64,000 nt of DNA from Phallusia mammillata. Lineage: Eukaryota. The DNA lies in NCBI GenBank assembly GCA_965637545.1, contig OZ281495.1, positions 14,074,001-14,138,000 of the forward strand, read 5' to 3'. This document shows positions 17,801-51,894 of this stretch, in pieces. The position numbers and the translations under genes were made by a program. Under the pieces are notes generated by a model that saw nothing but the letters and a program-made list of their open reading frames with translations, was not told the DNA's origin and searched no databases. Positions within the stretch are counted from its first letter, which is position 1. Each line of letters begins with the position of its first letter.

Positions 17801-20800
17801 AATAGGCTTGTCATATCTACAAACATTCAGAAAGATTTATACTTTTCATAACTGTTGCCCGGTGCCAAACGCTTATGATTTCGAGAAACTATAAATATAC
17901 ATGTAATATTGATTGACATAAAACAGGTCAAGTCAGACGCACGCAGAGCAGAAAATCAGACTTACAAAATCCCACTGCGCAAACGCTTGATACTAAGTAG
18001 AAAACCACGCACAACACATCATCATATTTTAATGGGATATTTCGACATTTTATGATCAAAGTGTAGCATCACCGAAAATATGTGCCATGGCCAGGTTCTA
18101 ACCCATATAAGCCCGATTAGTTTATTATTTGCAAGGTAACATCCTGCGCACTTGGCCATAGCGTGACTCATAGTTCTTAGATTCCCTTCGTTAGTATCGT
18201 ATCTATTTTTACAGCAGTTTGCGTGTTTAATTACCCCGTTATTGCCAGCGAAGTGTAGCTCCGCCAGTCACAGCTCGCCTTGGCGTTAACAGGCACGTGA
18301 AGTGGTTTGGTCCTGTGTAGCATCAGGTTCGGCAAATTAAGCTCATCAATCGCTGGCATGTTTACTACAAGGCTGCGCACGCGATCGGCCGTAGATGTCA
18401 CCTTAAGCTTCAGTACTAAGTGGCCGACAAGATTCCCAAATACGGATCACGACTAAATAAAGAAACGCGCGTAGCTGAGCTATGGTATGTCGTTAAGAAT
18501 TTTCCCACACTAAGCTAAATCTACGACTAGGTTGGTCAATGGTTTATTATTCAACAGCTTATAATGGCGTGTTGAACCAAATCGCATTACACGACCGCTA
18601 ACTTGCAATTTATTTGGCTTGTCGAATTCTTAGAATCGCAGCTTGTTAGCAAGGCTCAAAGACAATTAAAAAACTCGATGACAGATTGTGCTTGGTGATA
18701 AATCTGTAGCGACACCATGCGATAGAATATATTTATGCAAACTAATAAAGTTTATGTATTTATGTATGGCGCAATCATGGACGATTAAAATATTTCACCG
18801 AAAACCTTCAAACAAAATAATTTAACTAAAGTATTAGGAAACCACTACGGTGCAATTTGACAAATGCGAAAGCAATACAAGCATACTATTTAAAAAAACA
18901 ATCCATGCAAAACATAAACGTAGTGTTAATAATAGAGCAAAGACATTTACCACGCGGCTGGTTCTATTTCACAGAGACACAAACTTGTTCGACAACCTCT
19001 TGCAGCGGTTGCAGCAGTATTCGTACCGCCTTGAAGAACAAGTAGAAGAAAAGACTGAACAGTATAAAGCCGAGAAGGAAAAATCGGACAGTTTATTGTA
19101 TCAGATGCTTCCTAAACCCGTGGCTGACCGACTAAAGCTAAATACGGTCAGTAAATTCTCATATTTATTTTTTCACTTCCGTTTTAAATCCCCTAATTCG
19201 GATTCTAATTCTGCCGAGGAATTCGATGTTGGCCTAATTACTCGTTGCGGTAGAAGTACCATGAAACCGCGGTCAAATCTTAGGAAAATGTCGAGTAATT
19301 TCAAATTTGTCTGATAAAGTGAAGAAATATTTTGTATTTTTTTTGTTAGGACGTGATGCCGAAAAGTTACGACAGCGTAACAGTGTATTTCAGCGACATC
19401 GTTGGTTTTTCAACGATTTGCCACCAAAGCGAACCTTTGGAGGTCGTGAAAATGCTTAACGACCTTTATACGATGTTTGATCATATCATTGAGGAATTTG
19501 ATGTCTACAAGGTAAAAATACTCACAAATTTAGCGTCTAAACTGTATTTAATAATGTAACCCGATATTCACAACTTTTTTAAAAATGTTTAGTTAATGCT
19601 TTGGTTTAAAACCGAAACCTACTACGCGTACTCCAACCTGGGCGACCGCCCAAATCGCCTAAAACCTGGATAAAAACAACATTTTTTCTGCGTGTCTAGG
19701 TCGAAACGATTGGGGACGCATATATGGTTGCATCTGGGCTTCCTGACACAAATGGCAATCTTCACGCCAGAGAGATCGCAAGAATGGCGTTATCGCTGGT
19801 CGATAGCGTGGCAAATTCATTTGTAATTCAGTAAGTCCCTATGAAAAGTAATGACAAACTATTTCTCTTAACTTTCGTTCGAAACAGATTTTTGTTATTT
19901 TTCAGACATATGCCAGAAACACAACTAAAGCTTAGGGCTGGCATCCACAGTGGCCCTGTGGTGGCAGGAGTGGTTGGTCTCAAAATGCCAAGATATTGTT
20001 TGTTCGGTGACACTGTGAACACAGCAGCACGAATGGAACAACACGGGCGAGGTAAGCACTCGTAGAGTGTGTATCAAGTTATTTGGGATAGTTATAACAG
20101 CAGTTGTGTTGTTTTTCAGAATTAAAAATCCACGTTTCACCGAGCACCAAAGAAATATTGGATGTATTCCAAACTTTTCGACTCATGAAGCGTAAGGACA
20201 GTGTTGTACTCAAGGTAAGTGAAAATAGTAGCAAAAAGTTTAACGCCACACATTTTACCAGTTTGTAACAAAAAATCTATATCTTTAGGGACTGGGAGAG
20301 TGGAACACTTGGTGGCTGCTCGGAGAAGAGCAAGCAAATGTTGCTACCTCGCCCCAAATCGTTGACGTTTCAACACTAGACCTTGTAGAAGCCCAAAAGT
20401 TGAGACTAGAGTCGACTACGTCCACTGTGATGAGTTCATTGCCAGACTCGCCCACAGGCTACTGTGAAACCGTTTTTACTGTGGAGAACGAGACTGTGGA
20501 AGAAAGTGTCGATGCTTTTGAAGAAACCGTCCCACCCTGTAGCGAGGCAAGGCGGGGAAGCGGCTACACGCACACTCCGCGATACAAACGTTCAGTATTG
20601 TCTATTTCCGACAAGAAACGACGATTGGGTACCACTGCCCGTCCGCCAGTAACAATATCCTACGTTAGTGGCAACCCTTGCTACAAACAAATGGTAGCGG
20701 AGGACGGAGACTCAGACAAAGAGAATTCGATTCAACAAGAACCGAAAGTAAGACGAAACGGCGTGGACGAATCATCTACGCGGCGTCACAAAGCCATAGG

Positions 20801-22205: not shown

Positions 22206-23477
22206 CTAATGTCCGATATTTGAAGAGGAAGTCGGACGCAAAATGTCGCGGAAAACTGGGCTGAGGTTTTTGCCGTCGTTACGGTTCAAAACATTTGGAT
22301 TAGAATTTATGAGGCAACTTTCAAAGACCAATCTTTTCGACCAATTAGGTTCCTGTTTCAAAACTTGGGCATCGTTCCCATTAATGCGGTGATCACATAC
22401 AAAAACGTGTTCGCATAAGGCGGACTTGTTAACATCCATGTTTCTGACTGCCACTTTGTGTTCCTTGAGACGTGAATTTAGATTCCGCTTAGTTTGACCA
22501 ATGTATACCATCTCACAATCACGGCAAGGGACCTGGTAAACAACTCCTGTACGATGTTGTGGTATAGTGGCATCTTCTGGTTTTGGTAGAAACTGCCCAA
22601 TAGTTTTAAGAGGTTTCATTGCCACTTTTACCCCAGCATCATTCAGGATTCGTTTTAGGCGCTCCGATACACCCTGGACATAAGGTAAGCATGTGAATGA
22701 TTTAAACTGTCTGTTTTGTGAGGTGGTTGTGTTATAGGTCAAGTGGTGTAAGTTACGCGGGAAACCGTTATTCTTTAACACGCGTGCGTGTTTGTGAATA
22801 ACCGTATCCTTGATGTGAGTTGTGGATCTGTTGTAAAGCGTTTTGGCGACTGTAAGTTTTTGGTGCCGTGGATGGTGAGACGTGTAGTGTAGGTAGCGGT
22901 CAGTGTTCGTGGGCTTCTTGTATATGCCAGTGGTGAGCCTTTGATCTGGCTGCCTGGTAACAGCCACATCTAAAAACGCAATGGTATCGTGTTGTTCGGT
23001 TTCCATGGTGAAAGCTATTGTAGGTGATATGGTGTTCAGGTGTGTGTGAAATGTGTGGACCATGTTTCTGTCGATAATGACGTATGTGTCATCAACGTAT
23101 CGAAGCCATAGACGTGGTGGTGTGTGGAAAGTTGCAAGTGCCTTCTGCTCTATGTGTTCCATAGTGAGGTTAGCAAGAATAGCTGAAATAGGAGAGCCCA
23201 TGGGTGTACCAAAGATTTGTTTGTATATTGTGTCTCTATAAGTAAAAACTGTTGCGTTAAGACAAATCTGTAAAGCTGTTTGTATGTGAGAAAGATCTAG
23301 CCCGGTGCGTTCGTGTAGTGTAGTGTCGTGTTTGAGTTTGTCCAGAGTGACCGCGAGTGCCAAATCGGTAGGTATGGACGTAAACAAACTGACAACATCA
23401 AAAGAAACTTGGCATTCGCTTGGTTTTATATTAAAATTCGAAATAGTTTCTAAAAAGTCCAAAGAGTTTTTAATTGT
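22206..23477 (-). pseudogene. PLE reverse transcriptase + GIY-YIG endonuclease, C-terminal fragment
   Basis: ORF 22206-23462 carries RT core, thumb and GIY-YIG motifs. It is separated from its N-terminus by insertion, and the thumb region looks shortened. Confidence 0.88.
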
Positions 23478-26129: not shown

Positions 26130-27355
26130 ATTGTGTAATCGGAACGACCAACGATAGGCGAGATTATGGCGGCGAGAAATTTTGATAAATTATAAGTGGG
26201 TGAGTTTACGAAAGAAACAATAGGTCGCAAAGGGATATTATCTTGATGAATCTTCGGCAAACCGTAAACTTTGGAAGTAGTCCGTCTGTGCTTCTGTGGT
26301 GTATTCTTGGTCGGTGAGACAGTTGTCCGTGCGTAGTTTCCAAATGAACTTGTTTAATTCCCGTTCTATGACCTTCAGCGGATTTTTTGTTAATCGTAGG
26401 TATACCGAGCTGTCGTCCAAAAGTGCTTGTGCCTTGTGTTCATATTGTTTCCTATCCATAACCACTGTGCAATTTCCTTTGTCCGCTTTCAAGATTGTCA
26501 CCGATTCATCCTTTCGCAGATCACTTAGGGCGCGGGTCTCTTCCGGAGACAAATTTGGCTTGGGCGCCGTGGATTTCTTCAAAACCTGCGCAATCCGACT
26601 CCTAGCCAAATCCGCGGCAGCTGCGTTGTCGTTAGCGAGCCCTAGCAGACCCGCCTCTGCAGCACCAACCATTTCTAGGATAGGAACCTTCTTGGGTGCA
26701 ATTGCAAACCCGTGGCCTTTTTCCAAAACACTGTGTTCCGCTTTGGTTAGAATCTTAGAAGAAACGTTAACCCATCTTTGTTTGCTGAACTTTTTACCTT
26801 TCCTTGTAGTTTTTGTCTGCCGATCTTTTTGTAGCGCCTGGAGCTTCTTTTCATGTACTATGGAACAACCGGCTGCGGTCGACCTTTGTCGTTTCGTAGC
26901 ATACACATCCATACATTGCGGTGTTAAAACCTTCGTGAGGTGTAGTTTTAAGTCTTTGCAGCGTAGTTTGAGTTGTCCGATTTTTTGATGTGAGCTGGTT
27001 ATTCTGTCTTTGAGCAGTGTCCAGCCACACTTGCGAACTATCAAAAACGACGATCTAGATTTGTCTGGAGGAGATAGGCGAAGGCTTTTAGGTAACATAA
27101 CGATAGACGATTATGTATTATATGATATTGAGTTTCCTTACTACAAATCATTACCAATGTGCAAAATGGACTACTTTCTGACTACAAGGTTCAATAAATG
27201 TCCTTTGTGGACTAATCTGACTATACGACTGTAAAAACTTGTAGATGTATTTCAAATTTATTGCGAATTCTGGATTAATGATAAGTTGATATGGGTTGCA
27301 ATAATATTCAACGTGTATAAGTTGAAGGGACGAGTAATATGTTGTGGGAACATGA

Positions 27356-30300
27356 TTAGGCACAAATTTGTTTCGACTTTTGTGAGCAACAGAAAACATG
27401 GCGCTTGACTTTACAGACGCCTTGACTGTCACTCCATGGCCCGCACCCAGTATTATTGTCTCCCCACGCAGTGGCACCATAATGCTCGAAGTGAGTGTAA
27501 CACACGCGTCGGGCATAGCGGGCTTCAGCTGCGTCGTTCCCAATCTCCACCCAGTCATGTACTCCTTGTAAGTTGGAGTCACTGAACATGTACATACCAA
27601 ATGTAAAACAGTAATCATGTTGCTTGAAATCAATTATTGTATTTTTTTGCCATGTACTTTTATTGGTATTAAGTGTGTGCAAATGCGATCTAAAATATCG
27701 TCAATTTGTTAAAAGGGCGCGGACATAAAAGTTGAAGAAACACAAGGCTAGACTGTTGACGTAAAACAAAGTAAAAGCAGTCAAAACTCTTATAGTTTGG
27801 AACGTTATATTATTGTATAAACCTTACATTATTGGAGTCCAGTTGTCACCCTGCAGCACACCAGTTAAGAGAGGAATTCCGTGAGGGCAAATTTGGTCAC
27901 TTGAACAAAGATCACGTCCTGGTTGTGCTTTGCAGAAGCTTCGAGCGCTGTCCCATGTCATAGTTGGTTCCAGTATAAAGTGGTAGATGTTGTACGGGAA
28001 AGGTCCCGGCAAGGTTTCTGTGTAAAATTGTTTTACCATAGAACAATATTAGTTGTAACAGGCCTAGTTTTTAAACATAGGCCTAATTATTTTTGGAGCC
28101 ATGGTTGTGTGGTGATTTGTTTCGAATAACACATCGCATAAGTTTTGTACATAACCTTATAACTACTAATCATATAATACCCTTGACCACGATTTATCTA
28201 TACTTTTGAATTTTATGTTAATAACCAAAGTTATCTTGTGCAAGAACCATATAATCAAAGATTCCTATATTATCTTCCTACCAGGATCACTGCTAGGACA
28301 GCAAATAACGTAGCCTTTATGGGGGCAAGGATTTTCGTCAGTATTCCATGGGCTGCATTCTCCAGTTGTGGTCCCCCATGTTGGAAATCCGTGTTGGGCT
28401 ACGTGATTGTAGCAGGTCCTACCATGGCTGTCTCCGATCTCGACCCAGTTATTATAAAGGTCTCTAAAGAAACAAACCTAAAGATATACTTTTAAAATAT
28501 AATTGCAAAAACTAAGTACAAAATTTACTAAAGCTCCCAGACAAAAATTCAGCAAAATCAGGTAGTTGGTTCAATTCGAATGCATGTCAAGAAAAAAAAA
28601 ATTAAAAGTCTTCTACGCTTTCCAAAACTAGACAAGCTGCATGTGGAATTATTTGTCCTATACCTGTTTTGCACCTTTGTTTGCTATTCTTATTGAGGAA
28701 ATTTTACATTTTTTGGTTTCGCTTGATCAAAAAAAGTTATAAAAGTGCAAAAGTTTGTAAATATAAAAGGGGCTTAATGAAACAAATATGAATTCTTTTA
28801 GTTTTACCGAATTGGAGCCCAGTGATCACCGGAAATTACGTTTACAAGATCGAGCTGACCATCAGGGCAAATCTCTTCGTACTTGCAGAGATCTTGTCCT
28901 CTCTCCAGGCAATAAGAACGAGCTGTGTCGTATGTGGTATATTCCCCATCCAGCTTAACACCGGCTAATTAAGCAGTTGAAATCGAATCAATTATTTTCA
29001 AAAAGGCAACAGAATTGTGCACTTGTATGAAGTTATTATATTAAATGGCCTTTGGAACTTTCCGAGTGCAAACCTATTACAAAGGTCCCGGCTATTAAAC
29101 AAAACCTCGTTGAACTAGTTTAACACCTATAGTTTGATGATGTATAGTTTCCGGGACATGACGTAGCAACATTTGATGTTTTCCGCAATCAGGATGTAAT
29201 TTTTATTATTAAAGGTACAAACGGTTGCAAAAAACCTCGTCGCGCATTTGGAATGAAGTCGTTTGTGCAACAGCCAAGTATGACGGGGAATTTTGACTTG
29301 CAAGTGTTTGTATTTGCACTTGCAGCCAATGGTGCAATTTAAAGCGGGTTTTTCCAGACCTTCATTTTGAAAATAAACTTCATTAAATACAGGCCATAAA
29401 GACGATAAAACTGCACATGAAGTTTTTCAAAAACTGGTTATATATATATTTTTTTATAAACTGGTTAATTGCTTACAAGCAATTTAGTCTTGTTCGTTAC
29501 AGGAACACTAAAACGAAAATTATTGCGAGCGGGATAGAATAATAAGATAATGTCCTACTGTTCAACAAATATACGCTTTTTAACAATGATATTTTTATAG
29601 CTCTTTTCGTTGCACAAACGGTCGTTGACCCTTTTTCCGATTTGTAATCGTACCCATTTCCGCTATCAAACGTTTAAATTTAAACCAAATGTTTTGAAAT
29701 GGTCAACCAACGGATCTAAGCTTAGTTATACTTAGTTATAGTTATAAGTTATAAGTAACAGTTATAAGCTTAGTTATAAGTAACAAAAATCGCTGTTCAT
29801 ACCACAGCAGAGAATGATCTTTTTGTAGGGACAAGATCCTCCGTCGCAACCTGATAGACCCCAACTCGGTTGCCCGTAATGTTCAATGTGTCTGTAGCAA
29901 AGTTTGGATCGCCCAACTTGGGTCCAGTCGTTGTACTGGTCGCTGAAATGAAATGTTTTTTTTTACCAAAACAAAAGGAACCAATATAGACTATTGTTAA
30001 AATAGCATGGAAATGTAAACCCACAAAAATAAGATATTGTATAACTTCTAAATGCTTTTCGTTTTGCCTGATTTAAACTAATAAGAACCAAACACAGCAG
30101 TCTATAGTATAGAGACTCTATACGTTCAAGTTGGGTCAGCAAAACTAAACACTGCCCTTACAAAATCGTATATTTCTCAAAATAACAATCAATAATTTAC
30201 AAACAAACTAACAATTTTAGGTCCTTTGCTTGTATGAAACGCAATACAAAAAAACGGCTAGGAATTGCAAATTACCCAATTGGTACCCAGTTGTCACCAG

Positions 30301-30784
30301 TTAGGACTCCGATCACAGGGGGGTCGTTGTTCGCACATATTTCTGTGTGTGTGCAGAGACGCATTGCTTGCTTGTCGCAATATTCCGCCGCGGTTGTCCA
30401 CGTAAGGACGTTGGGATCCATTGCTCCTTGATAAACTTCTGTATAGGCAAAATCATTATTCAATTTTGTTGTTTACATAGGAACAAATAAAGTTATTTTC
30501 ATTTAAATTCAACCAAGCTGGGTGTAGACTAATTGTATAACTCCGCAAACCGTATCAACTTACTTAAGGCAGTGCAGACCTGTAGGGCAGAGACCAAAAG
30601 AACACTTGAAAACAACCTGAAAAAAGTTCTGCATTGTGACAAGTTATTCCATTACCGTCATTGTTAAATTAACGCCAATACTTTATTGTGAATGTACATA
30701 ATTTCTGGACAATACCAATTTTAAAAAGTTGAATTTTGTACAAGTAAGATACAACATTTTACCAAAACCATATCGCACTTACAT
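27356..30784 (-). CDS. Secreted triple-module Cys/Trp/His-rich protein, paralog B (370 aa); exons 30784-30783 (AT), 30616-30564, 30438-30276, 29942-29803, 28964-28808, 28463-28282, 28017-27828, 27581-27356
   Basis: All introns are GT-AG and the CDS totals 1113 nt in frame. Signal peptide MLFSSVLLVSALQVCTAL, three 8-Cys modules, TAA stop, and AATAAA at 27262-27257. Internal exon lengths match paralog A, except a 3-nt difference in exon 7. Confidence 0.9.
29718..29784. repeat. Degenerate AGTTATA/AAGCTT tandem repeat in intron 4 of paralog B
   Basis: Repeated agttata units read directly. Confidence 0.7.
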
Positions 30785-31899
30785 TTTAAAGTTTCACGTG
30801 ATTGCTATCAGGTTTCAAAACCACCTCGAATGGCGACATCAGTCGGCAAACAACCGCCTAAATAGGAATGGGGCGAAATCCAAAGAAAAAAGTGTTCCCG
30901 TCTGACTGGAACAACACAACTTCACAAAAACATTTTTTGAAGACAATCGCTCGCCGGTTGAAATGTAGTAAAACTTTTTGTCACTTGCCTGTATTAATAC
31001 TTACAACAGAATATTATAACGCATATTGTTTAGAACCGCATAGACAAACTGTATAAAGTGGTAATGATTTGTCGGCTTTTGCTGAGTTTGTGCAGGTGAC
31101 TTGCATTAAAAATTTCAATTATTTGCCTATGACAGTGCATGATGCAATTGAAAGCAATGTCATTAGTGTAAACCAAACATAATCTTTCAACCAGACTTGA
31201 AAAAAGTGTAATCTTGCATTCAATATCGGATGACCTTTGAAATGTTGGAATCACATCTTGCTCTTTTAAGGTCTTGGCGCAAACTGTGATAAATCTGAAA
31301 ACAAAATTGCATCAAGGCAACTAATTTATATTAGGAATTGTGATCAACCAAAATTAGCATGCAACTAAGTTTTATAAATTGTGTAATTTTTTCATGATGA
31401 ACATAATCCAACTTATGTTTTAAAATATTAAAGTGTGTAAAATTTGTTTAATACAATCATATAAGCATACTGCATAATCCCTTTAACTTTAAGCTTTACG
31501 TGCGTCTCAAAAGCACAATCTTTCGCTGGGATTTTGTGTTTGTGCAAAATATTTGGTAAGGTATTAATTTAATAGGTCTAAACTGAGGTTTAGTGGTGGA
31601 CAAATTCATTTTATAAATGCTTCATGTTTAATTTCTCTTCCTTACCGTCCGGACATTTTTGACAAATAAAGGTATAAAAGTCGAGTGCAGATCCAACGGG
31701 TTCTGACAACAAAGCAATTAACAACGCCTGAAGTGTATGCAGAAGATTTATTTGTTTATGCATTTTCAATTACAAAATGACAACATTGTGCACAATCCAA
31801 AATGGTGTTAAGAATACGCATTAAAATCATTCTAATTACATTTCAAAACTAACAAGTTTAATCATCCAAGGCTGTATCAAAGTCTAAGCATAGATGCGG

Positions 31900-34691
31900 T
31901 TAGTTAGTCTTTGCAGAACAACAAAACACGTGACGCTTAATTTTACAAACACCATTTTCATCACTCCAGCTTTCACATCCAGTGGTTCCATCTCCCCAGG
32001 CGGTGGCGCCATAGTGCACTTTGTGGGTAAAACAAACCCGAGCGGCATCTCTGGCAACATCGTTGCCAATCTGTATCCAGTCGTTAATGCCTTCCGGGTT
32101 CGAGTCGCTGAAACAAGTAAGTAACCATTAAATTATGTTTAATTTATGCATTTAGGTTTTGTTTTAACATCAACTATGATGTATTTTATAAGCGAGTACA
32201 TATTGTAGACCCAACCTAACATAAAATGGTTTAAGTCTTCGTTATTCGAAAAATAGGCGCAAAAAGCATAAGCACGATTAGATTGTGTAACTAGGTCAGC
32301 ATCTTTTAGAATATGTTAAGAGTAAATAGTCTTAGATTACTGCAAAGGCACCATGAGATATTACAAAACCTTGCAACTATTCTATGAATTGATCACAGTA
32401 ATTTACTGTTTAGGTATCTTACACAATAGGTGCCCAGTTGTCTCCCTGCAGTACACCAGTCAAAAGAGGAATTCCGTTGGGGCAAATTTGAGCACTTGAA
32501 CACAAATCACGTCCTGGTTGTGCTTTGCAGAAGCTACGTGCTTTGTCCCATGTCATTGTGGTAGGTTCCATGATGAAATGATAAATGTTGTATGGATAGG
32601 GGCCAGGTTCCGTAGCTAAATTATCAAAACATTTACATCACCAAAAGTGTTCTTTTTACAAATATTTTTTTACATTCCTTTCTTGCAGGAAAGAAATTAA
32701 TTATATCAATACTCACCAACATCATCGCTTGGGCAGCAAACGACATATCCTTTATGAGGACAAGCCTTTTCTGGGGTGTTCCATGGGGGACAATTTCCGG
32801 CTGTAATACCCCAAACAGGAAGTTCATAGTGCGCTTTGTGGTTGAAACAGGTTCGACCCGCCGAGTCCCCGATTTGTACCCAGTTGTTGTAAAGGTCCCT
32901 GTGGGGTTTTAAGAAATGTAATAAAAAGACACTTTTTTCCCATGTGTTTTGGTTGCATTAAATTCGGTTCAAAGTGTGGCTAAAATACTTTTACGAATAA
33001 ATTTAAATGTTTGAGCATTTACAGCCACCACTACGACAAAATAAAGAAATACATTAGTTTATTGTTAATTAAGGAGACTTTTGTAGCTGGGAGACAAATC
33101 GTAGATAAGTTACATTTTGTATTTTTTAGTAAACATGAGTGCAATTTATCGCAGTAATTCTAGGCCAAGTAAAAATTGATTTCTGAAAAATTCTTTATAA
33201 CTTTTAAGTGGTCGTTAAACTTCTCTAAACCATTGGTACAAAAACTTTTAGTAAGTCAATAACTAAATGTGTTATGGTGACGATGCAATGGCCCTTGGCC
33301 CCCTACAAAGCCGGAAGTTGTCAATATTTTTTTAAACTTACCGAATTGGAGCCCAGTGATCACCAGGTATCACGTTAACCGCTTCCAACTGACCATCACT
33401 GCAAATTTCGTCGTATTTGCAGAGGTCTTGGCCCCTCTCCAAACAATAAGAACGAGCCGTGTCGTAAGTTGTATATTCTCCGACTAACTCAACACCAGCT
33501 ATAAAAAAATGGATGCAGTTTTCAGATGGTGTACCCGTACTCAGACGAGAGGAAAAATGTTGAAATGAAATAAAATATATTTCTGATACAGAGAGATATT
33601 GTTGACATATATAACATGAAAGGAGACTTCTCACCAAACGATAAGGTCAACAGAAAAACACAAAGTCAGCATTTTCATGGTTACTTTGCTAATGTTGACA
33701 ATCATTAGCAACAATCGCATGATAAGTGATTGTTTGCAACATCTTACCGCAACAGAGAATGTTTTTCTTCCAAGAACAAGTGCTTGCTGAACATCCCGAA
33801 ACCCCCCAGCTAGGTTGTCCGTAATGTTGAATGTGCTTGTAACACAGTCTGTCTGAGCCGACCTGTGTCCAATCGTTGTACGCATCCCTAAAAACATGAT
33901 TTTAATCACAAACCCTGTTTACTGCTTATTTTAGTTTAGTAACTGTTAGTCGCACTAAATCGTACCCAATTGGTACCCAGTTGTCCCCCGTAAGAACTCC
34001 GATCACAGGAGGGTCGTTGTTCGCACATATATCATTGTGTGTGCAGAGACGCATGGCTTGCTTGTCACAATATTCCGACGCGGTCGTCCACGTAAGGACG
34101 TTGGGGTCCATTGCCCCATGATGAACCACTAAACAAATAACAAGGTACTCTAACTAAAAAGAATCGTTTAAGACTGGATTTATTTTAAATTGTTTTGTTG
34201 GGGAGCGGGTAGAAAATGAAATTCTGTTCTGGGTGGTTAAACAACGGTCTCAATCAAAATGTACAACTGATAAAGCTAGTGTTTGGTTTTTTAGCATTTA
34301 GTTTTCGACATCGCATAATTAAACTAAGGCGAAAAGTGTCGCGTATAGTATAATCGCATGTTAGGAAAAATAATCATTTTTTTTAAGATACAAAAATTAC
34401 AACATGAAAATAATTCTTATATTGGCAAGAACATTACATTTCGTGTAACAATACATTTAACTTACTTAAGGCCGATGTAAGTTGAACTGCAACGGCAAGA
34501 AAAATACTTTCGCAGAACCTAAAAATAAAAAAGCAAAAATTTGTTAAACCGTCTTTTTCGAACAGTTTTGTTAAACAAGGGAATGTAATTATCAAGAAAT
34601 AATTTGAACAATAGAAAACACTAATGACTAAAACAAATAGTAGAAAAGTAAAAAAAGAACACGAATAAAATAAAAACTGTAGTACTTACAT
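31900..34691 (-). CDS. Secreted triple-module Cys/Trp/His-rich protein, paralog A (365 aa); exons 34691-34690 (AT), 34518-34466, 34128-33966, 33887-33748, 33498-33342, 32898-32717, 32615-32423, 32107-31900
   Basis: All introns are GT-AG and the CDS totals 1098 nt in frame. Signal peptide MFCESIFLAVAVQLTSAL, three 8-Cys modules, TAA stop, and AATAAA at 31752-31747. Confidence 0.9.
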
Positions 34692-36623
34692 TTTCGCAGT
34701 AAATTCTTACTTGTCAATGAAAACCTTCAACCTTCAGGCTTCCTTTGCCAACAACTCAGGGGCTTAAATATTCCTACTGCCTTTTTCGGATGGATTGAAC
34801 TCGGTTTACATTTTGGCCTACACATGTTTGGCGAGATAAAGCGGTTGTTGTCTGCACGATCCACTTTTCGAGGACTTTAATGCAGATAAATGTCGAACAC
34901 TGCCAAACACAGTTTCGATCCTCTAGTTTTAAAATTGATTTTTTCTGCAGCAAAGATTTGCTTTCCAATCTGCAGTATTTGTTTAAACAATATGCCTATT
35001 CAGCAGTTTTCCAACAGAATTTCCAAATATGGCAACACACGTTATAGTTCAGTCTTTAATAACGTTTCAAAGATGATAATCAACCGCAAGGTTAAACCAC
35101 ATTTACTATCTAACCAAGTACCGAGTGGGTGTATCGAAAACACACATAACAAACTGTTGAGTCTTTATGGCATTGTTTTGCTTTAAATTTGTTTCCCAGT
35201 GCGCAGCTATAAAATAATTAAAAGTTTGAGGTAGCATTATTGACAGTAATATGAAAAAAATCTGTCATTGAATTCCCCATAAGTCAAATAAATCAACTTT
35301 TTCGTTATTGTATTTTTCATGGCGCACCGTTTGAGAATCGATGATCTAATTAATACGTTAATGAACAAATCAGACCCAATGTGATAAACATAAGAGTGTC
35401 CAAAAAATTTCTGCCACGCTTTGCAATTCGCCCAGACACGGGCTTTGGACACGAATTTTAGGAGAGCTAGACTCAATATTTTAAGTTCTATAGTTATACG
35501 AACTAAAAGCTATTCGCATGTTGTAAGTTGACAATTGATGTTAAAAGCGATTGCGAAATTAGCGACTGATTAAAGCTTGTTGTTCCGATACATTATCAGC
35601 TTGCTGTTTTTTTGTTAGTGTTTAGTCGGCGTGTCCTAAATTATTTGTTCAATTTGCTTTACTCGATATTGCAGTTACAACGCAATTGTGCGGCAATATA
35701 AAACGGTTTTTGTCACAAATATTTCAGCTCTAAAAATGTATACATTAAGCATGCTTTGTGTGGACTCTGCAGCACGGTTTAAAGCTAATAAAAACATGTA
35801 ATTTTACTGTTTAAAGCAGTTAATGGTCGCCTTGAGAATGCTTATATAATCTGATAAAGTGCCTTAAATTGTTAGAAAAGCCTATGTTTGGGAACAGAAT
35901 GTAGTGGCAACGGAGCAACGAGCTTTTGTACCTGTCAGTTAAAGTATTGCCCACTGGAGCAAATGCTTTGTTGATGAACTAGTTTGAGATCATTGACCTA
36001 TTTATAATCAGGTTACCGGTTTAACGGACGGTTTTGCTTATAAAAACACACAGATTTGAAATTGCACGTAAGCTGATCAACAAGCAATTTTTTGTTTGTT
36101 GGTGTTTTGTGAGCGATAACTTTGTTTGCGCAAATTCCAACGCTCACAAACTAAACCAAATTGTGTTTGCTTTATTTGTCTGTTCTACAATTGTCACCTC
36201 GTGTGTTTTATTTTAATTTGTTAGAGAAAAAACATCGACTGAATTAAAATCAACGTTTTTACGATACATGTTCAAAATTTTCATCTCGCATTAAAACTTT
36301 CACTTCTGTGTGGCACAAGGTAATAGTACTGGCATCAAAATAACTAATCCTAATCGTTAACTTCGTTTGATAAATTACCAATATTTATTGTTACAAGTGA
36401 TATTTGTTGGGTATAATTTTTTTTTCAAAAAACAGAAAGTTATAAAAGTATATTTATGTCAAATCTGAACCAGTAACATTATACACGGATTTTAAAAGTA
36501 ATTTAATCAAAAACATATGTAACTTAATTATGTATTATTTGTGATGCCACCCCAAACAGCTTGCGTTTACTCCGTTTTTCCTAGGTGATTGCATAAACCC
36601 TGTTCTAGCTCGTATGACAAATT

Positions 36624-50471: not shown

Positions 50472-51894
50472 CACTTAGTAACTGAAGCTTTCAGTGCACC
50501 TAAATCAATCCGTGTTTTTCGTGTTGCAATGTATTGTAAACAAATAATATCGATTTCGCCGATATAATGGCATCCTCAGTTCTAAGCAAGAAATAAAATA
50601 AAATAAAATAAAGTTATTTAGGCAATAAAAGATGTAAAAATAATAAAAAAGACTGCTACAAAGACAACACACAACTCGACAGTTAAATCAAACGTTAAAA
50701 CGGATACAACATAACGACACGAAGAACAAAAAAGCGACGTGGTGGAAAAGGCGATAAGACAAACGCGTGACCGAAAAGTGCCTTCCGCAAGCAACCTGCA
50801 GAGTTGTTATCTAACCTGTGGCAGGATCATTTTTGCGACGTTTATAGTGACTTTGATTTTACCATACCACTTATCTTCACGTACGTCCAACATGCACATG
50901 GCAGGTTGTTCTAAAAATGTGACGCGAAAGCATTGTTCGATGCCTGGTCTTTTGTCTAGAAGCGTCGGGTGAAGTTGGTGATAATGGTGAAGCATTGCCG
51001 CCTGTTCTTTTGCACTGGAAAGATCACATGCTTTCCATATGGCTCTGTGCGCGTTCCATCTGGTTGAAAACTTGTTTTTCGTTTGTCCAACATAGTTTTC
51101 TTGACAAGTTGAGCATGTTGCCACATAAACTCCATAATTTTTGCACGTTAGGGTTTGCCGAAGTTTGAAAACTCGTTTGTTTGTCTTAAACGTGGTAGTG
51201 GGAAACACCATCGATTTATGATTTTTGAAGCAACCACATAAAGCGCAAGCTCCGCACGGTTTTGATGTTCCATTTTCTGTGGTAGTTAGCGCCAGGGCGA
51301 TTTTCCGGTGGGTGGTCAACATGCCACCAAGAGTTAAGGGCCGTTTGTAAACTACTTTGGCATTAGGCTTTAGACCCTGATTTGCTTTAACCAGGTTGGG
51401 AAAACCTGTTGCCCAAACCACCGTTTGTGCGGTCTATATAGAGGGAGTCTGTCTTGGAACACGTTGATCCCATTTCGCAGCGAGGTTGATGACGTCGGTT
51501 GTCATCGTGTCAGAAAAATCTGATTTTCGGCACTTTTGGCGTAATCTTACAAGGCTACTGGTGTAGTCTGATGCACGTTCGTTTAATCTCCTCATTCGAG
51601 TAGCTTCAGAAACCACAATTGATTTGAAAATATGTGGCGGGTGGTGCGATAAACCGTTTAGATCAAGCCGGTTTGTAGCGGTTGGCTTTTGATGATCTGT
51701 AGTAAAGAAGCCTGGACTTTCGCTACAAGCAACATGAGAAACATCTAAGAACTCTAGTTTTTCACCTACGCAGGTGGTGTTTAAACATCGGAAGGTTAGT
51801 GCCAGATTTCTTGAGCCGAAAGATTTTAAAAGATGCGATTTCACACAATTTGTGTTTCTCTCGCCAAAAGATATCCAAATAATATCGTCAATAA
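50472..51894 (-). mobile_element. 5'-truncated Penelope-like retroelement, Neptune type
   Basis: RT end (FIDDIIW, LEFLDV, SHHPPHIFKSIV), Cys-rich linker (KPCGACALC) and GIY-YIG (YGVYVATCSTCQENYVGQT) lie in two broken ORFs (51907-51434, 51421-50807). The 13-bp direct repeat AGTTGTTAACCAA is at 50459-50471 and 51895-51907. Confidence 0.9.

Follow-up and report, generated by a model that had tools for sequence, protein, structure and literature searches.

The closest described counterparts of the protein module considered here are the Link module (Xlink, PF00193), which is present in TSG-6, aggrecan G1, LYVE-1 and CD44 and contains four cysteines, and the canonical C-type lectin domain (Lectin_C, PF00059) of selectins, PLA2R and collectins. 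Calcium-independent variants of the lectin fold are also known from adhesin tips, namely the C-terminal domains of Bd2740 (Bd2740-C, from Bdellovibrio MAT fibres), intimin and invasin (PMC10769870). Here we analysed a window of 64,000 nucleotides from the ascidian Phallusia mammillata (assembly GCA_965637545.1, contig OZ281495.1, positions 14,074,001 to 14,138,000), whose minus strand carries between positions 27356 and 34691 a tandem pair of genes, A and B, each encoding a signal-type leader and three modules with eight cysteines. Profile matches place these modules in the Pfam family DUF7495 (PF24325), a domain of unknown function known best from diatoms, and modelling makes it highly probable that they are compact short-form C-type-lectin-like domains (CTLDs) of the Link, intimin and Bd2740 type that lack the long Ca2+/sugar loop. 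The initial annotation of this stretch had regarded the proteins as uncharacterised and as a candidate for an undescribed secreted system; the module is already catalogued in Pfam with hundreds of relatives, while its lack of functional characterisation stands, given that the only match is to a DUF and that no characterised family was found. Searches of the literature collection used here returned no paper on DUF7495 or PF24325, and nothing relevant on P. mammillata together with C-type lectins. The gene pair is a well-supported annotation of two uncharacterised genes in a catalogued but unstudied family, and not a new kind of system.

Both genes are intact and consist of eight exons, with 365 codons in gene A and 370 in gene B according to the summed exon lengths, and the interval is bounded by the stop codon of gene B (27356) and the A of the gene A ATG (34691). 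The exon plan is identical in the two genes, comprising a first coding piece of 2 nucleotides (AT), a signal exon of 53 nucleotides and six module exons. Exons 2 to 6 are equal in length between A and B (53, 163, 140, 157 and 182 nucleotides), whereas exon 7 has 193 nucleotides in A versus 190 in B, and exon 8, stop codon included, 208 versus 226. Every module is encoded by two exons separated by a phase-2 intron directly after the W-x-P-I strand, and the module borders coincide with phase-1 introns, an arrangement typical of shuffled domains. The reading frame is open through all 16 exons, whose splice sites are canonical and whose phases match. The first intron of either gene splits the start codon (AAAAT/GTAAGT ... 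AG/G; positions 34684-34691 and 30777-30784, minus strand), and the unspliced genomic ATG directly precedes a TAA.

The exon peptides match a single Pfam family, DUF7495, which was detected in nine of the ten exons scanned. Scores were taken per exon, that is, for the two halves of a module separately: first-half exons align to profile positions 9-59 with 27.1-33.2 bits (E-values of 7e-8 to 5e-6), all four that were scanned lying above the curated cut-off of 27 bits, and second-half exons align to positions 61-108, adding 16.5-21.6 bits, so that the modules cover the whole 109-position profile in two pieces. A profile search of the genome likewise gave 30.5-33.7 bits at the window exons, above the cut-off. 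In addition, a family hidden Markov model (HMM) built from 58 natural contiguous modules, all from other organisms, matched exactly 12 segments in the window, alternating between first halves (model positions 5-52) and second halves (51-99); against the six-frame set each first-half segment reached an E-value between 4e-9 and 5e-11, far above chance. These 12 segments, together with the exon plans and the transcript joints of gene A described below, uphold the original description of a tandem pair in which a putative signal peptide precedes three eight-cysteine modules.

Transcripts support the predicted splicing, for gene A throughout and for gene B at one joint. Four public runs from this organism, belonging to three studies, supplied contigs for comparison with positions 28751-34750, a stretch that ends before gene B exons 6-8. 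All eight introns of gene A are represented by GT..AG joints at exactly the predicted bases in these four runs from three studies, and the gene A start codon is restored by its AT/G joint in the four runs. Spliced contigs and separate low-depth contigs containing introns occur in the same runs, indicating that the runs contain RNA; contig depth cannot be read as abundance and, as the runs were picked via gene A, they give no ranking of A versus B expression. In two additional studies the runs contain next to no sequence words of gene A, so that spliced gene A contigs were found in three of five studies, and this near-absence suggests that expression is probably restricted to particular stages or tissues.

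In gene A, the last two bases of exon 1 are the AT of the start codon (34690..34691, minus strand, as are all exons below); the joint 34516/34688, shifted by two bases to obtain GT..AG, places the exon end at 34690. Exon 2 (34466..34518; joint and sequence) supplies the G of the ATG and the putative signal peptide (M)FCESIFLAVAVQLTSAL. Module 1 is formed by exon 3 (33966..34128; Pfam E-value 2.2e-6, joints on both sides), running from beta1-alpha1 to GDNWVPI, and by exon 4 (33748..33887; family HMM E-value 3e-9, joints), which carries a short C-x4-C loop and the motif C-x-x-H-x-x-H. Module 2 is formed by exon 5 (33342..33498; Pfam 5.4e-6, joints) and exon 6 (32717..32898; Pfam 7.8e-4, HMM 1.5e-7, joints), which includes a CPPWNT loop predicted to be closed by a disulfide, and module 3 by exon 7 (32423..32615; Pfam 6.8e-8, joints) and exon 8 with the stop codon (31900..32107; Pfam 8e-3, HMM 3e-5, joint). 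At position 32073 three of the four runs have C instead of G, which by our codon reading changes Gln to Glu in the WIQIG segment of module 3; Glu is the residue of gene B at that site, and the difference is a polymorphism or a strain difference.

In gene B, the AT that ends exon 1 (30783..30784) was located by analogy, in the same context as in gene A (AAAATGTAAGT), and exon 2 (30564..30616), encoding the putative signal peptide (M)LFSSVLLVSALQVCTAL, has the 53-nucleotide length and the phase of its gene A counterpart. The halves of module 1 lie in exon 3 (30276..30438; HMM 5e-11, 91% amino acid identity to gene A exon 3) and exon 4 (29803..29942; Pfam 2.7e-4), and those of module 2 in exon 5 (28808..28964; HMM 1e-10) and exon 6 (28282..28463; Pfam 0.011, HMM 8e-7, canonical AG/GT sites); exons 4 and 5 are connected by the joint 28964/29803, which is the only gene B joint in the compared stretch and has low-depth support from two runs. 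Module 3 is encoded by exon 7 (27828..28017; Pfam 4e-7, HMM 1e-10) and exon 8 (27356..27581; HMM 1.2e-3, alignment), the latter with the stop codon preceded by a C-terminus ...QICA (27359-27370) that is lacking in gene A and contributes one extra Cys, so that the cysteines of the mature protein are odd in number; this residue could form an intermolecular disulfide.

Comparison of the two genes showed that synonymous sites are saturated, with a summed synonymous divergence (dS) of about 1.6, and that no intron or flank can be aligned; therefore, the duplication is old. The ratio of non-synonymous to synonymous divergence (dN/dS) is about 0.09 overall, and both copies are under purifying selection. 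The halves of the module differ in this respect, with dN of 0.20-0.25 in second halves versus 0.05-0.09 in first halves, and protein identities of 68-70% and 86-91%, respectively. A 5-kb contig of another assembly matches the window genes in the types and order of its three modules and in intron position, which marks it as the orthologous locus, and the three-module architecture is conserved in another ascidian. All this makes it extremely improbable that the reading frames are decaying copies or chance exon-like segments, an explanation that could appeal to gene B being barely seen in the compared runs and to the Penelope-like retroelement reading frames directly downstream of it: dN/dS is low over a saturated dS, all exons are open with matching phases, and an orthologue of the same layout exists elsewhere. 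For gene A a non-functional status is refuted by transcripts spliced as predicted, in three studies.

The HMM from other organisms' modules also matched the two-exon pattern at paralogous loci of the same genome, on contigs C8, C4 and C308. Both C8 (1993129-1999887) and C4 (16328817-16339011) carry DUF7495 genes in tandem, whose introns lie at the position seen in the window; the genes on C8 are of the eight-Cys form, with a C-x-P-W loop and only the first His of the pair, and those on C4 have six Cys. A further paralogue on contig C1 (11153768-11157037, open reading frame (ORF) 1480-2841) is an open frame of 453 codons in which a DUF7495 module free of introns is followed by a CUB domain and the beginning of another module; it has neither the His pair nor two of the cysteines. 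Introns, this paralogue with its CUB domain and the nearest named relatives all indicate an ascidian source.

Outside this genome, a search of 1.84 billion representative proteins with a profile made from the six first-half exons found 272 relatives at an E-value of at most 1e-3, most of them unnamed metagenome or transcriptome proteins. Named relatives include the diatoms Seminavis robusta (two giant proteins of 4172 and 6919 residues, with 16 modules each) and Thalassiosira exigua, the pelagophyte Chrysophaeum, the haptophyte Prymnesium parvum, the octocoral Dendronephthya gigantea, with secreted-looking proteins of 320-339 residues and three modules, and the ascidians Clavelina lepadiformis and Styela clava. 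The window proteins differ from the giant arrays in being short, presumably secreted chains of three modules, each split by the conserved phase-2 intron. In a quick IQ-TREE analysis of 114 modules, named animal and named diatom modules were split by one branch with a Shimodaira-Hasegawa-like approximate likelihood ratio (SH-aLRT) support of 90, although most rows of this tree are unnamed and most forks unresolved, and the split favours neither horizontal transfer nor an ancient origin. A word-based search with a three-module piece of Clavelina returned only a Clavelina paralogue and the Prymnesium protein, the window product not being among the matches, and querying the ESM Atlas by features with a single exon yielded scores of up to 0.86, to be taken as a lead only.

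Domains found together with DUF7495 in these relatives are collagen repeats, ricin-B lectin, CUB and O-FucT, contexts that are all extracellular or glycan-related. In the P. parvum protein DUF7495 lies inside a GDP-fucose protein O-fucosyltransferase-domain protein, and in one eukaryotic protein it follows a collagen triple-helix region, in a collectin-like layout.

With respect to individual residues, T, A, C, LC, IC, V, GD, W and PI are invariant among the six first-half exons and D, W, G, C, H, WG, C, C, K and CC among the six second-half exons, giving eight Cys per module. Alignment of the window exons to 129 family modules (hmmalign) revealed that the alpha1 Ala, six Cys, W47, P49, N55, W57 and P79-x-W81-G are invariant or nearly so across the family, and most of the family residues A11, C15, C23, C29, W47, P49, N55, W57, C68, P79-x-W81-G and C96-C97 are present in all six window modules. 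The exceptions are N55, which is Asn in five modules and His in module 3 of gene B, and P79, which is Pro in four and Thr in both copies of module 3; hmmalign misplaced P-x-W-G in the modules that bear a loop, where the motif is visible in the exon alignments. In selectin, the counterparts of the two Trp are the core positions WIGL and W-x-W. Since Trp, Asn and Pro are family-wide and both Trp occupy CTLD core positions, these residues mark the fold, and the earlier proposal that the conserved Trp and Asn form a ligand site is not supported.

The features that distinguish the ascidian modules from the rest of DUF7495 are the eight cysteines, the C-x-x-H-x-x-H turn and a C-x-x-W loop in modules 2 and 3. 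Eight Cys were counted in seven of the 129 family modules, against six Cys in 116, and each module is predicted to have four disulfides, three family-wide and one formed by an ascidian-specific pair. The loop has the form C-x-x-W-(N/S)-(T/D)-x4-C, is presumably closed by the extra Cys pair and carries an invariant Trp, and its CPPWNT sequence is identical in gene A module 2 and Clavelina. The initial annotation had described Trp and a His pair as strictly conserved in the six modules, which is accurate for Trp and for the first His (C-x-x-H), found in all six and in 43 of the 129 family modules; the second His stands at +3 in five modules and at +4 in one. Across the modules compared, the complete C-x-x-H-x-x-H is confined to those five and to four Clavelina modules, making the pair an ascidian feature, and at the orthologous locus it occurs in one of the two second-half exons read and is shifted by one in the other.

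The fold was modelled with AlphaFold2 (AF2) on a Clavelina module (residues 454-563), the closest natural contiguous relative, which shares with window module 2 the eight Cys, the His pair and the CPPWNT loop, at an identity of about 55-60% by eye; an alignment of 58 sequences was used as input. The model has a mean predicted local distance difference test score (pLDDT) of 86.9 and a predicted template modelling score (pTM) of 0.81. When it was compared with 48,161 chains using VIA-align, all 50 of the listed top entries were CTLD-like, spanning residues 1-110 with Z of 3.5-6.6; Bd2740-C came first (Z 6.6), followed by the Link modules of aggrecan G1 (6.1) and TSG-6 (5.7), intimin (5.4), LYVE-1 (5.3) and invasin (5.2), and then by many canonical CTLDs (3.5-4.9). 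The weak matches obtained with Foldseek against the Protein Data Bank (PDB) all belong to the C-type-lectin-like superfamily (Mincle, FGE/EgtB, LYVE-1, TSG-6, poxvirus A33/A35, selectin and intimin). An ESM Atlas shape search ranked a DUF7495 cluster first, with a template modelling (TM) score of 0.76, then a nematode C-type lectin (0.60), and then FGE, Lcl_C/DUF1566, invasin and Xlink clusters.

Sequence comparisons point in the same direction. The family profile retrieved only CTLDs from the PDB sequences (PLA2R, E-value 6e-4; E-selectin, 5e-3), aligning W-x-P and N-x-W-V-x-x-G of the module to WIGI and NVWVWVG of selectin; single-exon and six-exon profiles gave sub-threshold matches only, all to CTLDs for the first half and noise for the second. 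The first-half exon profile reached a 12xLectin_C protein (E-value 2.6e-14), and hhalign aligned DUF7495 with Lectin_C (E-value 9.5e-5) in the beta1-alpha1 segment only. It is thus the uniformity of the structure matches together with independent sequence evidence, rather than any single Z value, that makes the C-type-lectin-like fold highly probable, and the resemblance of the first half to the beginning of C-type lectin and Link modules, already pointed out from the letters, is supported by profile and structure matches that are all CTLD-like.

Within this superfamily the module differs from each described group. Link modules share with it a length of about 100 residues, a compact topology, the absence of a long loop and an extracellular location, and they resemble it over 83-86 residues at the Z values given above and with Atlas TM scores of 0.50-0.51, whereas the window modules have eight Cys with another spacing and belong to acidic proteins, Link modules being basic. 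Membership of the Link family was rejected, given that no window exon has an Xlink Pfam match and that the framework has eight Cys; it is the fold alone that is alike. With canonical Lectin_C domains the module shares the beta1-alpha1 signature W/Y-x-x-A-x-x-x-C and two core Trp, but it has no long loop, and a short stretch bridged by a disulfide (LC....IC) takes the place of alpha2. A canonical Ca-dependent C-type lectin was also rejected, on the basis of the length of about 95-110 residues, the missing long loop, the absence of any Lectin_C match at an E-value of 10 or less, and a motif scan that, in agreement with the initial annotation, found no EPN, QPD or WND in any window exon. Bd2740-C, intimin and invasin, although among the best structural neighbours, are bacterial, without sequence similarity to the module (9-14% identity), devoid of the disulfide framework and trimeric or fibre-borne, in contrast to the window modules, which are arranged in tandem in one chain.

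Since no DUF7495 protein has been studied so far, we infer function from the binding-domain fold, the signal-type leaders, the disulfide-rich modules, the trivalency and the partner domains of relatives, which together suggest, with a probability of roughly 0.6, that the products are soluble trivalent extracellular lectin-like binders, such as agglutinins, or matrix cross-linkers. Both products are presumably secreted, as their N-termini are hydrophobic over 17-18 residues with small residues at the end (TSA-L and CTA-L) and inspection of the exons of either gene found no further hydrophobic stretch; sequons for N-glycosylation are almost absent from the exons. With about 365-370 residues each, the products are acidic (24 K+R versus 39-40 D+E, a net charge of about -15, and 13-14 His), and the presence of three DUF7495 modules in one chain would confer multivalency. 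The ligand would be recognised via the faster-evolving second half of each module, where, in the model, the C-x-x-H-x-x-H turn and the C-x-x-W...C loop may form a binding face at the place of the classical C-type lectin ligand loops. As to the nature of the ligand, our guess is that a glycan is somewhat likelier than a protein, and the acidity of the products does not favour binding of polyanionic glycans. The immune, tunic or metal roles suggested in the initial annotation are guesses as well.

Several observations weigh against this reading. Link modules and many glycosaminoglycan binders are not acidic as these proteins are, and the proposed binding is drawn from fold and context only. The model represents the Clavelina module rather than the spliced product of the window, and its least confident part is precisely the putative ligand loop (pLDDT of 64 at residues 91-100). 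In addition, Z does not exceed 6.6, below the level of 8 that the tool deems safe on its own, Foldseek gave no match in the PDB at an E-value below 1, and the profile-profile homology between DUF7495 and Lectin_C covers 29 columns only, with a probability of 59%. Finally, transcription of gene B is represented by one low-depth joint.

The same structural neighbours could be read in another way, since they include the compact or Ca-free, protein-binding domains of intimin, invasin, phage Mtd (Z 4.6), snake-venom snaclecs and natural killer (NK) receptors, and it is possible, though rather unlikely, that the modules bind proteins instead of glycans, the product acting on a protein receptor as a soluble ligand, opsonin or adaptor. 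The absence of Ca and sugar motifs in the window exons and the acidic surface would fit such a role, as would a Clavelina relative in which the module is fused to Cys-rich CCxxDLCN domains, of Ly6/uPAR type by our reading and with no Pfam call. However, Link modules match the model equally well, and matrices rich in glycans would accord with the ricin-B lectin, O-FucT and collagen partners and with the use of the domain in giant surface proteins of diatoms.

Those giant, repetitive diatom proteins, the odd Cys count of gene B with its possible intermolecular disulfide, and the recovery of spliced gene A contigs from three of five studies could also be accommodated if the products were structural parts of the tunic, of an egg or larval coat, of mucus or of a similar extracellular matrix, the modules serving mainly as stable building blocks and cross-links rather than as specific receptors. 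We consider this unlikely, as there are only three modules, low-complexity or polymerising regions are absent, the modules are under strong purifying selection throughout, and contig depth says nothing of abundance.

A role in handling or buffering metal ions, with the ascidian C-x-x-H-x-x-H turn as the metal site, is less likely still. Some ascidians concentrate vanadium, the proteins are acidic and contain 13-14 His, and the pair is present in five of the six window modules (shifted by one in the sixth) and in all four Clavelina modules; moreover, H75 and H78 are helical in the model, so that positions i and i+3 would share one face. Two His are nevertheless insufficient for such a site, no further conserved ligands were identified, and, because the second His is absent outside ascidians, the first alone being widespread, the function of the family cannot depend on the pair. 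The candidate of a vanabin-like metal carrier was rejected, as no search revealed similarity to vanabins or to other known metal carriers.

An extended version of the preferred lectin-like reading, which we regard as doubtful, would make DUF7495 a new Ca-independent lectin class in which the ascidian Trp loop and His pair constitute a novel glycan-binding or metal-assisted site; the trivalent proteins would then be an unrecognised factor of humoral recognition or matrix assembly sharing ancestry with diatom and haptophyte surface proteins.

Elsewhere in the window, remains of Penelope-like retroelements are located on the minus strand at 22206-23462, 26238-27098 and 50807-51421. One Penelope-like ORF combines a reverse transcriptase with a GIY-YIG nuclease domain and lies, together with a further ORF that has no Pfam match, directly downstream of gene B, and a second GIY-YIG ORF lies near 51 kb. 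On the plus strand, an open frame at 18850-19314 contains an HNOBA domain (E-value 6e-7) and is probably an exon of a guanylate cyclase gene.

DUF7495 is a sizeable family of extracellular domains, with hundreds of clusters and up to 16 copies per protein, and its hosts are ecologically dominant algae and a few marine animals. The placement of the module in the lectin fold, together with a small, expressed three-module version of about 365 residues in an ascidian, provides a tractable entry to this family, and a ligand, if found, would annotate the whole of it, the giant diatom surface proteins included.

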